Positions 6,466 through 37,678 of a stretch of 64,000 nt of DNA are shown here, one piece after another (within the stretch, counting starts at the first letter, position 1; every line of letters begins with the position of its first letter). The stretch lies in sequence record PP777464.1; one strand, given 5' to 3'. A model generated the notes under the pieces. The model worked only from the letters and a program-made list of their open reading frames with translations, searched no databases and had not been told where the DNA came from. The position numbers were made by a program, and so were the translations under genes.

Positions 6466-7080
6466 ATGACTACATCTGAAAAGTACTGGTGGATTATGGG
6501 CCATCCTAAATTCATCAACGGAGATATGGTTCCCCCAAGGATTGATATCGAACCACATGATGTGTGTCCAATCACAAACCGCATTGAATCATTTAAAGCT
6601 CTGAATACAAAGACACAATTTTGGGTAGAATTCATCTCACCTATGTACGTTGAGCAAGATGATGAATGGGTACAAGCACATGATTATGAGTTAGATTGCG
6701 GTGGTGATACTTATGATGAGGCAATTGATGAACTATACAAAAATGTGCTAAACACTTATGGTGATTACACCCAACAAGAAGCAGACGATACGTTTAATAA
6801 GGTCCATGCAGTCATTTCTACATCATCAATTTACAATTCAACAAAAACAATTTGGGAAGAACGTCACGGGTGGAGTTCATCTGTAATTGATGCTGAAGCC
6901 AAAGAAACAATTCTGGAAGACATAAAAAATATAAAAAGTACAATAGAAGCCTTGCGTGAATTTATAAAGTCTTGTACAATAGAACAACAGAAAGAGGCAA
7001 AGATGCATTTGGAGAGTGAAGAATGTAAACTTTGGGTTCTAGAGAAATCATTTGAAAAGGGTATAGACTTAGACTTATGA
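6466..7080 (+). CDS. hypothetical protein
   Basis: GGAG RBS before ATG at 6466. Confidence 0.8.
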   Translation: MTTSEKYWWIMGHPKFINGDMVPPRIDIEPHDVCPITNRIESFKALNTKTQFWVEFISPMYVEQDDEWVQAHDYELDCGGDTYDEAIDELYKNVLNTYGDYTQQEADDTFNKVHAVISTSSIYNSTKTIWEERHGWSSSVIDAEAKETILEDIKNIKSTIEALREFIKSCTIEQQKEAKMHLESEECKLWVLEKSFEKGIDLDL

Positions 7081-7445
7081 ATCGTAAACTTGAGAAACTA
7101 ATTGAAGAATTGCGACGGATGCCACCAATCGAGCAAGTGGGGAGCTACAAACGTTATCGTGTGATTGCTCGTGCACTTGATAAGAAAGGTCGTGTATTGG
7201 CAACACGTACTAATTCTTACACACATACTCACCCAGTACAGAAAGGTTTTGCAATCCGTGCTGGTCGTCCACAAGGTGAATTTCTTCATGCTGAAATCTC
7301 ATGTTTGCTGGCTTCTCGTGCTGAAGTTCATACTTTGTTGATTGCACGGGTAAGTAAAGATGGTATTCCAGTCCCTGCCAAGCCTTGTGAGATTTGTACG
7401 TTGGCAATTATGGAATATGGGGTAAAAGAAATTATTCACACATGA
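7077..7445 (+). CDS. zinc-dependent cytidine/dCMP deaminase-like protein
   Basis: HAE...PCEIC zinc motif. Confidence 0.8.
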   Translation: MNRKLEKLIEELRRMPPIEQVGSYKRYRVIARALDKKGRVLATRTNSYTHTHPVQKGFAIRAGRPQGEFLHAEISCLLASRAEVHTLLIARVSKDGIPVPAKPCEICTLAIMEYGVKEIIHT

Positions 7446-34746: not shown

Positions 34747-35862
34747 ATGAAAAAGTATTTGGTTGGTGGCTACGTTCGTGACCGTTTAATGGGCATCCGT
34801 GCAAAAGACAAAGATTATGTTATTGTCGGTGCTACCGAATCCGATATTAAATACTTGCAAAGTATTGGATACAAGCAAGTAGGTAAGGATTTCCCTGTAT
34901 ATCTAAGTCCAGAAGGTAATGAACACGCATTAGCCCGTACTGAGCGTAAAACTGGTACTGGATATGGTGGTTTCGAAGTGAATACAAAAGGTGTGACACT
35001 AGAACAAGATCTATATCGTCGTGATCTCACAATCAATAGTATTGCATATGATCCAGTACTCCAGATTCACATCGACCCTTATGGCGGGAAAGCTGATATC
35101 AAGAACAAAGTACTTCGTCATGTATCAGAACACTTTAAAGAAGATCCATTGCGTGTTCTACGTTTGGCCCGTTTCGCTACGCGTTACTCCGACTTTACAA
35201 TCCATGATGATACTATGACAATGTGTAAAGATATGGTTAGTACTGGTGAACTAGACCATCTAGTTCCAGATCGTGTTTTTGTTGAATTCGAAAAAGCACT
35301 TTCTGAAGAAAACCCTTCCAAGTTTATCAAAACTCTGGTACAATTTGGTTATTACGAAAAGGCATTTACTACAGTTCCAGTTACCAAGAAACGTCTGGAA
35401 TTAATTGATTCTATCTCTGTAAATTGTACAGAAGAATATAAACCATATTTCTTATGGACAGTACTTCTTGAAAATGAAGAAGTAAATAATGATTCAGTAC
35501 TTAACGGTTCCATTAAGGTTCCAGTTAAGTACGTGAAGTTTAGTAATTACATCAAGCGTTTCCGTGAAGATATTAAAACCTTCCGTAAGAAGACCCCAGT
35601 TGAAATGGGACAAATCTTACTGGATATGAATATCAAAAACAATGGTGGTGAAGATTTCCTTTACAAAGTACTGGAAAACTTCATTTTGAACAAAGAAATT
35701 GATTCTGAACTTGAAGATTTGATTATTAAAGTTTATGATCGTTATACTGATGTTGAATTACCTGATATTCAGCAGTTAGTGAAAGATGGTGAACTCCAAA
35801 CATCGGAGATTCGTGATTTTGTTGCTGAATTGCGTATTGAAGCAATCAAGCAAATGTTCTAA
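34747..35862 (+). CDS. cca: tRNA nucleotidyltransferase (CCA-adding enzyme, class II)
   Basis: YLVGGYVRD, DKDYVIVG, ARTERKTG.GY.GF, DL.RRDLTINSIA, EDPLRVLRLARF. Confidence 0.93.
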   Translation: MKKYLVGGYVRDRLMGIRAKDKDYVIVGATESDIKYLQSIGYKQVGKDFPVYLSPEGNEHALARTERKTGTGYGGFEVNTKGVTLEQDLYRRDLTINSIAYDPVLQIHIDPYGGKADIKNKVLRHVSEHFKEDPLRVLRLARFATRYSDFTIHDDTMTMCKDMVSTGELDHLVPDRVFVEFEKALSEENPSKFIKTLVQFGYYEKAFTTVPVTKKRLELIDSISVNCTEEYKPYFLWTVLLENEEVNNDSVLNGSIKVPVKYVKFSNYIKRFREDIKTFRKKTPVEMGQILLDMNIKNNGGEDFLYKVLENFILNKEIDSELEDLIIKVYDRYTDVELPDIQQLVKDGELQTSEIRDFVAELRIEAIKQMF

Positions 35863-35937
35863 AAGCTGGGACAAGTTAACATCTTCTGATATAATTACTA
35901 GTATCTGAACATCACTTGATGATAAAGAGATAAGATT

Positions 35938-36382
35938 ATGCGTTATAGCTGTGGTATAATATTTTATCGTGATGGTCAGATACTTATCGGGCATACAACA
36001 CGGACAGAATCACTGGGACTTACCTAAAGGTAAAACTGAAGGTACAGAAACATTTAAAGAGGCTGCTGTACGTGAATGCTACGAAGAGACAGGATATGAA
36101 ATCGATGAAGATGATCTTCTGTTTCTTGGTGATGTATCGTATAGAAAGGGGAAACGTTTAGTTTTATTTTTCTATACAGCCAAAGATAAGCCTATACCAG
36201 AAGAGTTGGTGTGTAAAAGTACTTACACAAACAGATATGGTAGAAGTCACCCAGAATTGGATAAGTTCATGTACATTGATGTACTAGATTGTCAAAAGTA
36301 TTTGACTGAACGAATGTGTAACAGTATAATAAAGGCTGTTACGATGTTTCAACGAAATAAAGGGAAAAGAAATGAAAGTTAA
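35938..36382 (+). CDS. NUDIX hydrolase (T4 NudE-like), split by a +1 shift at CGG 36001
   Basis: Frame 0 gives MRYSCGIIFYRDGQILIGHTT; the +1 frame gives GQNHWDLPKG...AAVRECYEETG (Nudix box). Confidence 0.85.
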
Positions 36383-36620
36383 AATTTATGGTCGCACTAC
36401 TGGTTGTAAATTCTGCGACACTGCTAAAGCAGTATGTGAAAATAACAAATTTGATATGGAGTTTATCGATATTGTTACCGCTGGTATTGATGGTGCTAAA
36501 CTATCTGAACTATGTGGTGAGCCAGTACGACAGGTTCCACAAATTTTCGTAAACGATGTTTACGTTCCAGGTGGCTGTACTGGTTTCGTTGAAGGTCTTA
36601 AAGAAGGTCGCTGGAATTAA
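36372..36620 (+). CDS. glutaredoxin
   Basis: GCKFC, VRQVPQIF, VPGG. Confidence 0.9.
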   Translation: MKVKIYGRTTGCKFCDTAKAVCENNKFDMEFIDIVTAGIDGAKLSELCGEPVRQVPQIFVNDVYVPGGCTGFVEGLKEGRWN

Positions 36621-36862
36621 TGAATATTGATAAAGTATCATCTCGTGCAAAACATTTAGCTGACACATTGGGTGTTGAATTTAAAATGCCTGATATGGAA
36701 GCCGCAAAAGTTAAAGCACAACGTAAAATTCACAAAATGAAAGAATACACTACTAAGAAAGAACAGTACGATAAAGCGGTTGCTTATATTATTGAAGCTT
36801 TCAGTAAAGATGATATTTTGGCATTCATCGCTTCAGTAGAGGTTTCGAGCAACCCTAAATAA
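36620..36862 (+). CDS. hypothetical protein
   Basis: TAATG overlap. Confidence 0.7.
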   Translation: MNIDKVSSRAKHLADTLGVEFKMPDMEAAKVKAQRKIHKMKEYTTKKEQYDKAVAYIIEAFSKDDILAFIASVEVSSNPK

Positions 36863-36907
36863 TAATGAAGAACACAAGTTCTTCGTAACAATTTGGGAGA
36901 TACTATT

Positions 36908-37150
36908 ATGCTCAGTTTTCGTGAACAATTAGCAAAAGGCCAATTCGCTGCTAAAGCTCAAACATCCATTCCTAAAAAGTCTGCTTTCTTAGGGACGATT
37001 ACAGAAGATGGTTATTGTGATTATGATGCACCAGAAGATTCATGGTACATTACGAAAGACACAAAACGTGGTAATAGACTTCACAAAAGTACCATTGCTC
37101 GCAAACAACGAAAAGAATTGAAAAAAATTCGATTCGGTGAAGAAGAATAA
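36908..37150 (+). CDS. hypothetical protein
   Basis: GGGAG RBS before ATG at 36908. Confidence 0.7.
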   Translation: MLSFREQLAKGQFAAKAQTSIPKKSAFLGTITEDGYCDYDAPEDSWYITKDTKRGNRLHKSTIARKQRKELKKIRFGEEE

Positions 37151-37160
37151 AATATAAATT

Positions 37161-37190
37161 AAGGACTCTGATTACAGAGTCCTTTCTTTT
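37161..37190 (+). terminator. rho-independent terminator
   Basis: AAGGACTCTG-ATTA-CAGAGTCCTT plus T run. Confidence 0.75.
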
Positions 37191-37201
37191 CGGAGAATAT
37201 A

Positions 37202-37678
37202 ATGATACATGAACACCTAGGTAATTTGTTTGAATTGTTCAACACTGTTACTGATGATCAAACCGCGTTGCATATAATCGCTCATGGTTGTAATGCACAG
37301 GGTAAGATGGGTTCGGGTTTTGCAAAAGAACTAAGAAATCGTTATCCGATGGCATATGATGATTATAAAGCATATGAAAAGGAAATGGGATTTCTAAGAA
37401 CAGGACAAATTTCATATTCTTCTATAAGTGATGATTTGCTTATCGCAAACTGCATTACCCAAAAGTACTATGGTAATGACGGTTCTAAGTATGTGAGTTA
37501 TGATGCAATCGATGATGTTTTCAAACAACTCAATTACTTATGTAACGTTGAACGCACTGTTCATGTACACTTCCCGAAAATTGGAGCCGATTTAGGCGGT
37601 GGTAACTGGAACGTTATCAAAGAAATCATTGACCACAGACTGGTTAATGCAGAAAAACACTTATACTTTCTAAAATAA
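37202..37678 (+). CDS. macro domain (ADP-ribose processing) protein
   Basis: IAHGCNAQGKMGSGFA...FPKIGADLGGGNW. Confidence 0.88.
   Translation: MIHEHLGNLFELFNTVTDDQTALHIIAHGCNAQGKMGSGFAKELRNRYPMAYDDYKAYEKEMGFLRTGQISYSSISDDLLIANCITQKYYGNDGSKYVSYDAIDDVFKQLNYLCNVERTVHVHFPKIGADLGGGNWNVIKEIIDHRLVNAEKHLYFLK

Follow-up and report, generated by a model that had tools for sequence, protein, structure and literature searches.

We examined a stretch of 64,000 nucleotides (nt) from sequence record PP777464.1, referred to here as the window, in which a gene for a NUDIX hydrolase is divided between two reading frames by one extra base. Positions are those of the window, and the features described are on the plus strand unless stated otherwise. 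The first segment of the gene begins at ATG 35938 and encodes, in frame 1, the 21 codons of MRYSCGIIFYRDGQILIGHTT (35938-36000), after which the same frame continues through RTESLGLT to a TAA stop at 36025-36027; this zero-frame tail with its stop occupies 36001-36027 and would form the end of the 29-residue product made if no shift takes place. Frame 2, open from 35960, codes for ...HGQNHWDLPKGKTEGTETFKEAAVRECYEETGY..., including HGQNHWDLPKG, up to the stop at 36380-36382. The second segment of the gene (36002-36382; 126 codons and the stop, frame 2) begins with GQNHWDLPKG, whose first codon is GGA 36002, and carries the Nudix box GKTEGTETFKEAAVRECYEETGY. The DNA from 35986 to 36022 reads ATC GGG CAT ACA ACA C GGA CAG AAT CAC TGG GAC and contains no homopolymer, and the window as a whole contains no N. 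Omission of the extra base, C36001, fuses HTT to GQ, and omission of A36000 gives the same protein. A preliminary description of the window, made from the letters alone, had proposed that the gene is broken by one extra base at ACA-C-GGA, and its coordinates and translations were exact.

Two starts have to be considered for this gene, the upstream ATG 35938 and an internal start in frame 2 (GTG 35969 or ATG 35972; 35969-35974), which is the one annotated in the databases. A weak Shine-Dalgarno-like AAAGAG (35924-35929) lies 9-14 nt 5' of ATG 35938, and a GAG is found 9-11 nt before the upstream ATG in every relative compared, split or intact. The Shine-Dalgarno pairing energies were −2.9 kcal/mol for the upstream ATG and −2.8 kcal/mol for the internal start and thus did not discriminate between them. 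The preliminary description had argued that the GTG start has no ribosome-binding site (RBS); as the weak Shine-Dalgarno sequence is present there and that of the upstream ATG is no better, this argument turned out to be neutral.

The downstream piece of the protein matched Pfam PF00293 with an expectation value (E) of about 1e-11 to 4e-11 and 43 bits, against a score cut-off of 21.1 bits, and phrog_1185, nudix hydrolase, with E = 6.8e-45. The Nudix box GX5EX7REUXEEXGU is represented by G-KTEGT-E-TFKEAAV-RE-C-Y-EE-T-G-Y, in which all G, E, and R positions are filled and both U positions are occupied by Cys and Tyr rather than by Ile, Leu, or Val. The Pfam match of the downstream piece began only at profile position 25-29 and extended to 97; in contrast, the intact orthologue of Serratia BF matched over residues 6-117 at profile positions 7-117, so that Pfam positions 7-27 are covered by the intact protein and the downstream piece enters at 29. 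The closest solved relative, the diadenosine tetraphosphate (Ap4A) hydrolase of Aquifex (3i7u), aligned from residue 4, and an AlphaFold model built from six intact orthologues placed strands at residues 2-11 and 14-19, with a mean predicted local distance difference test (pLDDT) score of only 65. All Foldseek matches to that model were generic NUDIX folds with template modelling (TM) scores of 0.4-0.5 and were uninformative on substrate. We concluded from the Pfam coverage, the 3i7u alignment, and the modelled strands that the 21 upstream codons correspond to the first beta hairpin; they are therefore predicted to be an integral part of the NUDIX fold, which would be complete only with both pieces joined. 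The statement in the preliminary description that the short open reading frame (ORF) loses the first strand was borne out, since these 21 codons encode a NUDIX part that is absent from the annotated ORF.

The joined product, about 147 residues long, is predicted to be an ordinary NUDIX hydrolase of the T4 NudE (e.1) type, a family represented by phrog_1185. Identity to T4-like NudE proteins was 35-43% over 70-94% of the downstream piece, and these proteins share the N-terminal motif GH(A/T)T...HWD(I/L)PKG, which in KpF2 reads GHATETPHWDIPKG. The motif GHxT...HWDxPKG spans the junction in the window and is contiguous in intact orthologues; as had been proposed from the sequence of the window, the joined reading restores GHTTGQxHWDLPKG, the form found in intact orthologues and T4-type NudE relatives. 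Unlike the split gene of the window, T4-type NudE genes are one unbroken ORF. T4 NudE is reported to hydrolyse the dinucleotide substrates flavin adenine dinucleotide, diadenosine triphosphate, and adenosine diphosphate ribose (ADP-ribose).

Distribution of the extra base among related phages

The window belongs to an Asteriusvirus jumbo coliphage. Over 1.1 kb around the gene, identity was 100% with Escherichia phages fEgEco12 and WPEC3, 99.5-99.9% with a further seven phages, and 98.8% with TH47; it was 80-86% with 121Q, PBECO4, and some 25 more Asteriusvirus jumbo phages with genomes of 310-390 kb. The site itself was inspected in the window, fEgEco12, TH47, CMSTMSU, 121Q, PBECO4, SD-1_S14, UE-S1, ph0011, JNE01, Turkey5, A4, and metagenome contig OEQX01000033, and ACA ACA C GGA was present in all 12 distinct sequences. 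A 74-nt query from 121Q across the site was 100% identical in 21 GenBank records, and altogether more than 30 records, from many laboratories and countries and differing from one another at adjacent positions, contain the extra base. Pattern scans for more members of this clade returned only 121Q among viral contigs and, from metagenomes, a single contig that matches 121Q exactly. The coding sequence was started at the equivalent of the internal ATG 35972 in all nine annotated Asteriusvirus records inspected, and none of them contained a join.

Intact orthologues consisting of a single ORF were found in EJP2, Munch, Serratia BF, Yersinia fHe-Yen9-04, Cronobacter GAP32, Pectobacterium CBB, Klebsiella phiKp_21, and five metagenome contigs. 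They begin at the upstream ATG with MR(Y/H)TCGIIFYRDGQILIGHTTGQxHWDLPKG, the motif varying as GH(T/C)TGQxHWDLPKG, and their DNA reads ACN ACN GGN CAR where the window reads ACA ACA C GGA CAG; the window therefore has exactly one base in excess, and the intact genes are one base shorter. Homologues that genuinely start at the GTG, which the preliminary description had envisaged, did not appear: homologues outside the genus begin at the upstream ATG, and within the genus the 21 upstream codons still evolve as coding sequence (see below).

These comparisons indicate that the extra base is real and a genus-wide property of Asteriusvirus. A sequencing or assembly error in the window draws only on the general frequency of single-base indels in assemblies; it would have to occur where there is no homopolymer, and as the same base in more than 30 independent genome records and one metagenome contig, and we regard it as scarcely conceivable. 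The doubt already voiced about a routine indel error at this site was thus well founded. Two records inspected contain breaks that, unlike the conserved NUDIX frameshift, look like problems of record quality. CMSTMSU (MH494197, UNVERIFIED_ORG) has further breaks in the NUDIX gene and its neighbours; and in SD-1_S14 (1075-1312 of the retrieved piece) the glutaredoxin gene is divided into two coding sequences. Among the intact relatives, EJP2 (OQ411014, 638-1315 of the retrieved piece) has the NUDIX and glutaredoxin genes as one ORF of 225 residues, ...KKEDNMKVVIYGRKAGCKWC..., annotated only as 'glutaredoxin 1'; this could be a natural fusion or a lost stop codon.

The origin of the insertion was examined in two trees. 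For the C-terminal 150 residues of the CCA-adding tRNA nucleotidyltransferase encoded next to the NUDIX gene (34747-35862), the tree had all frameshifted phages on one side of a branch, and one change sufficed, with a support of 70. A tree of the 348 nt of the NUDIX gene was poorly resolved and called for at least two changes, A4 being pulled towards Munch and EJP2; this stretch of DNA is too short and too saturated to serve for a single-origin test. The downstream part of the A4 gene has FAEA, FEIDEKD, KYKP, and LKC in common with Munch and EJP2, and not with the other frameshifted phages. The conflict between the two trees over A4 points to local recombination or to retained ancestral states. 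The simplest reading, although not proven, is a single origin of the insertion in an Asteriusvirus ancestor, with local recombination possible.

Selection on the two segments of the gene

Within the frameshifted clade, the downstream part of the gene had proportions of synonymous differences (pS) of 0.47-0.70 and of nonsynonymous differences (pN) of 0.04-0.08, a pN/pS ratio of about 0.1, values that indicate an old clade with purifying selection acting on the gene. The upstream 21 codons had pS up to 0.44 and pN of at most 0.02. When the minimum number of substitutions was counted by codon position, the upstream 63 nt read in frame 1 gave 1, 0, and 9 changes at positions 1, 2, and 3, and the downstream 348 nt read in frame 2 gave 24, 12, and 91, so that 91 of 127 fell on third positions. 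The binomial probability of at least 9 of 10 upstream changes falling on third positions is 3.6e-4, and the lone upstream change elsewhere was a conservative exchange of Ile and Val. The 27-nt tail read in the zero frame gave counts of 6, 1, and 0, indicating that it is selected in the +1 frame and not in the zero frame; its zero-frame translation varied (RTAALGFT, RTTALGFT) and in A4 was two residues longer. Scored in the annotated frame, the upstream changes fell on position 2 and altered residues, and the ten frame-2 residues before the shift varied accordingly (MVRYLSGIQH, MVRYLSDIQH, MVRYLLVIQH, MGRYLSGIQH, and MVRYLLDTQH). In frame 1, purely synonymous changes extended as far as His19 (CAT/CAC), and changes of the frame-2 type began at the Gln (CAG/CAA), which places the switch of frame within ACA ACA C GGA. 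We concluded from these substitution patterns that both halves are under protein-level selection, with the register switching at the extra base; such a switch in codon periodicity is enough by itself to reveal a conserved 'broken' gene.

An antisense ORF (35776-35994) was considered as a source of the upstream constraint and rejected, because its exact antisense register puts the variable sites on its first codon positions. As a separate observation, the DNA of TTTTATCGTGATGGTCAGATACTTAT (35962-35987) was nearly invariant, also in comparisons between genera in which the synonymous sites of the NUDIX gene are otherwise saturated, which may reflect codon preference or an unrecognised constraint at the nucleotide level.

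The substitution pattern bears on three explanations that do without recoding. A shift of frame after 21 codons is the textbook sign of an inactivated gene, and the insertion could have left a decaying pseudogene whose remnant is still undegraded; yet pS reaches 0.5-0.7 between members with pN/pS near 0.1 in both halves, the start, the stop, and the Nudix box are kept, and the sequences inspected, the unverified CMSTMSU aside, have no further stop or indel. We consider decay very improbable.

The main rival is internal initiation at ATG 35972 (or GTG 35969), which would produce a truncated protein with the first hairpin replaced by about ten unrelated residues and would leave the upstream 29-codon ORF as a remnant. 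The in-frame ATG is present in all clade members, has a Shine-Dalgarno score equal to that of the upstream ATG, and has been chosen by all annotators, and its use would also account for the purifying selection on the downstream part. It would leave unexplained, however, the frame-1 third-position bias of the 21 upstream codons, including the ten codons 5' of the internal ATG; four synonymous changes sit in that region, where the annotated model predicts no coding constraint. The ten frame-2 residues that it would add are unconstrained, its product would lack Pfam NUDIX positions 1-28 and with them two strands of the central sheet, and the ATG itself is a by-product of conserved Arg-Asp-Gly codons that is also found in the intact genes of Munch, Serratia BF, and Yen9-04. 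Weighing these points, we find internal initiation unlikely, although it is the strongest competitor of a frameshift.

Selection on both pieces at the protein level would be explained, without recoding, by a split protein: translation would yield the 29-residue peptide, made up of the hairpin and eight unrelated residues, as well as the fragment starting at ATG 35972, and the two would associate non-covalently to form an active NUDIX fold. Such an arrangement requires efficient internal initiation, for which there is no evident signal, and it places an unselected tail of each fragment at the interface, where the zero-frame tail varies in both sequence and length. A NUDIX domain divided behind its second strand is not known to us, although no exhaustive search was made, and a split protein seems to us improbable, more so than internal initiation by itself.

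A putative +1 frameshift at ACA_CGG_A

The explanation that best fits the sequence comparisons is a conserved corrective +1 ribosomal frameshift at ACA_CGG_A, which we consider reasonably probable. The candidate heptamer (35998-36004) would present the Thr codon ACA in the P site, the rare Arg codon CGG in the A site, and the Gly codon GGA in the +1 frame; the site, ACAACACGGACA, was unchanged in the 12 sequences despite pS of up to 0.7. We propose that the ancestral Asteriusvirus jumbo coliphage acquired a one-base insertion, which its descendants have retained. Ribosomes would initiate at ATG 35938, translate 21 codons, and hold Thr-tRNA(UGU) on ACA 35998-36000 in the P site when CGG, the rarest codon of the phage, enters the A site; as this codon is read by the scarce host tRNA-Arg(CCG), they would pause. 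A fraction of the paused ribosomes would accept Gly-tRNA on the overlapping GGA 36002-36004, skip C36001, and read on in the +1 frame until the stop at 36380-36382; their product would contain ...GHTT-GQNHWDLPKG..., joined as in intact orthologues. The other ribosomes would terminate eight codons on and leave the 29-residue peptide as a by-product. This would be a shift at a hungry sense codon without re-pairing of the peptidyl-tRNA, of the type seen in Ty3 and in glass-sponge mitochondria. That the ribosome, and not another process, makes the join, which codons occupy the P and A sites, and how efficient the shift is are matters that we infer. The readings predict different peptides, DGQILIGHTTGQNHWDLPK across the junction of the +1 product, DGQILIGHTTR from zero-frame termination, and YLSGIQHGQNHWDLPK from the internal start. 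The full-length protein would have a mass of about 17 kDa and the internal-start product one of about 15.7 kDa.

No sense codon is rarer than CGG in the 62 long ORFs of the window, where it occurs 3 times among 16,057 codons; AGG, the next rarest, occurs 16 times, the preferred Arg codon CGT 389 times, and ACA at 25 per thousand. The CGG of the NUDIX gene is the only one in the window with a 0/+1 arrangement of ORFs beyond that of an ordinary gene start. Four other CGG-centred sites in the window matched this geometry, one of them at 34827 within the CCA gene, and none was credible. In E. coli, tRNA-Arg(CCG) is scarce and its near-cognates are more abundant, a mechanistic model of +1 frameshifting gives CGG_C an A-site score among the highest, and a +1 shift at CGG_C in yehP has been verified by mass spectrometry (PMC2790909). 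Because one base inserted at random will seldom produce the rarest codon of the genome where it lands, the presence of CGG here suggests that the insertion that could be tolerated and fixed was limited to one making that codon. Two of the three in-frame CGG codons of the window (CGA CGG ATG and GCA CGG GTA) fall in a single ORF of 123 codons at 7076-7445, which is either not a real gene or has atypical codon usage.

Other ways of joining the two segments were considered and rejected. Bypassing of the T4 gene 60 type, for which GGG 35989 and GGA 36002 were the sole candidate pair of take-off and landing codons, is incompatible with the GGT found in place of GGG in JNE01 and Turkey5 and would delete HTTG, whose codons change only synonymously in frame 1; hops from GGG to GGA and from CAG to CAG conflict with these two phages and with the frame-1 synonymous changes up to codon 19. 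Transcriptional slippage would require a homopolymer or simple repeat, and the site has neither. A suppressor-like phage tRNA with an 8-nt anticodon loop was excluded, as both tRNA-Thr(UGU) genes have loops of 7 nt (CUUGUAA). These two genes, whose tRNAs decode ACA, the codon of the P and E sites at the proposed shift, lie in tandem at 294987-295140 of fEgEco12, near genes for tRNA-Ser(GCU), tRNA-Met, and tRNA-Asn; no Arg or Gly tRNA was found in the scanned 8-kb tRNA region of fEgEco12, nor is one listed in the fEgEco12 paper. The gene for tRNA-Thr(UGU) occurs once or twice in other clade members, and tRNA-Thr genes are widespread in phages. The phage tRNA-Thr(UGU) fits the heavy use of ACA and is not specific evidence for a shift.

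Several points weigh against a frameshift at this site. The P-site tRNA-Thr(UGU) cannot re-pair after a move from ACA to CAC, and shifts of this kind are usually of low efficiency in bacteria; the site, if it belongs anywhere, therefore belongs to the Ty3/sponge class and not to the Ty1/prfB class. No stimulatory RNA structure was found in a fold of 35985-36075 (z = −0.21 relative to shuffled sequences), and an alignment fold of eight clade members gave no covariation (covariation term +0.55). Nor is there a conserved internal Shine-Dalgarno sequence, since the only G-rich triplet upstream, GGG 35989, is replaced by GGA or GGT in relatives; the 3' context is not conserved either, and synonymous sites beyond GGA vary freely. 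RBS strength gives ATG 35938 no preference over ATG 35972, the upstream region is only 63 nt long, and the selection test is built on 10 substitutions. The single origin of the insertion is weakly supported by the CCA tree, at 70, and the NUDIX tree is incongruent with it. Finally, the case is built on the comparison of sequences. Without re-pairing and without a Shine-Dalgarno sequence, a structure, or a conserved 3' context, the efficiency of the proposed shift is probably low, and the frameshift may act mainly as a brake on NUDIX expression.

Known recoding systems and the surrounding gene cluster

To our knowledge, productive +1 shifts are very few in bacteria and phages, namely those of prfB and of some structural genes of Listeria phages. 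The shifts of prfB, which encodes RF2, and of Listeria phages PSA, A118, and A500 (PMC5009743) take place at a stop codon or by slippage on CCC (CUU_UGA_C, CCC_UGA), with P-site re-pairing and a Shine-Dalgarno or pseudoknot stimulator, none of which is present at the NUDIX site. A closer parallel is found in the mitochondria of glass sponges (hexactinellids), where a single base inserted directly 5' of GGA makes a very rare in-frame CGG (or UGG) and the protein is restored when GGA is read in the +1 frame, with no obvious re-pairing of the peptidyl-tRNA (PMC5009743). The CGG_A motif is identical in the two systems; the sponge sites are read by mitochondrial ribosomes with a reduced tRNA set and their inserts are mostly T, whereas the phage site would be read by E. 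coli ribosomes during infection and its insert is C. At the Ty3 site, GCG_AGU_U, there is a 3' stimulator of 14 nt and the P-site tRNA is a special near-cognate; at the phage site no stimulator was found, and ACA is read by a cognate tRNA-Thr(UGU), which the phage itself also encodes. The CGG_C sites identified by FSscan in yehP, pepP, and cheA use the same E. coli translation apparatus, in which CGG in the A site is scored among the codons most prone to shifting because of its scarce tRNA and the competing near-cognates (PMC2790909); these sites truncate or alter a normal gene and have no demonstrated function, whereas the phage shift would be needed for a conserved protein, and their +1 codon is GGC, compared with the GGA of the phage, where the P-site ACA lacks +1 pairing.

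A literature search found no report of this NUDIX frameshift, and the genome paper of fEgEco12 nowhere mentions a NUDIX gene. Since the enzyme itself is predicted to be ordinary, the unusual part appears to be its decoding, a genus-wide single-base interruption at the rarest codon that seems to be maintained by selection. If the proposed frameshift is correct, it is a selection-maintained +1 shift at a rare sense codon, without re-pairing, on ordinary E. coli ribosomes; it would bring the mechanism of Ty3 and sponge mitochondria into the most tractable experimental system, in which the model of out-of-frame binding could be tested by way of tRNA-Arg(CCG) levels in a K-12 host; the Asteriusvirus phages Sharanji and slurp01 were isolated on MG1655. 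The annotated start is probably wrong in all nine Asteriusvirus records inspected, and gene callers will go on choosing it.

A more speculative idea, which we put forward as a rather doubtful one, is that CGG_A acts as a regulatory sensor, NUDIX output being determined by how much charged tRNA-Arg(CCG) there is relative to tRNA-Gly(UCC) and expression rising when host tRNA is depleted or attacked. Arginine starvation or anticodon-nuclease defences would then raise NUDIX levels when the neighbouring CCA-adding enzyme is also needed, and the tRNA-Thr(UGU) encoded by the phage, sitting in the P and E sites, might play a part. A 2016 review of recoding stated that no trans-frame proteins with a starvation-specific function were known to arise from hungry-codon frameshifting (PMC5009743). 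If the sensor idea were true, this would be the first conserved, functional +1 frameshift at a hungry sense codon in a bacterial system.

The NUDIX gene is part of a cluster (34747-37678) that begins with the gene for the CCA enzyme, its upstream neighbour, and continues downstream of NUDIX with glutaredoxin (36372-36620), two small unknown genes (phrog_34640 and phrog_15319), and a macro-domain protein (37202-37678; Pfam Macro E = 6e-4, phrog_335 E = 3e-46). The cluster may constitute a module related to tRNA repair and to ADP-ribose and NAD (nicotinamide adenine dinucleotide). A promoter-like site (35868-35895), recognised by its match to the consensus alone, consists of GGGACA, a spacer of 16 nt, and an extended −10 of the form TG-n-TATAAT, with 10 of 12 matches plus the TG. 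Its extended −10, TGATATAAT, lies about 40 nt 5' of the NUDIX ATG, and the core GATATAAT is kept in 121Q and PBECO4. Boxes resembling this site are also present 5' of the NUDIX gene in Munch and phiKp_21.
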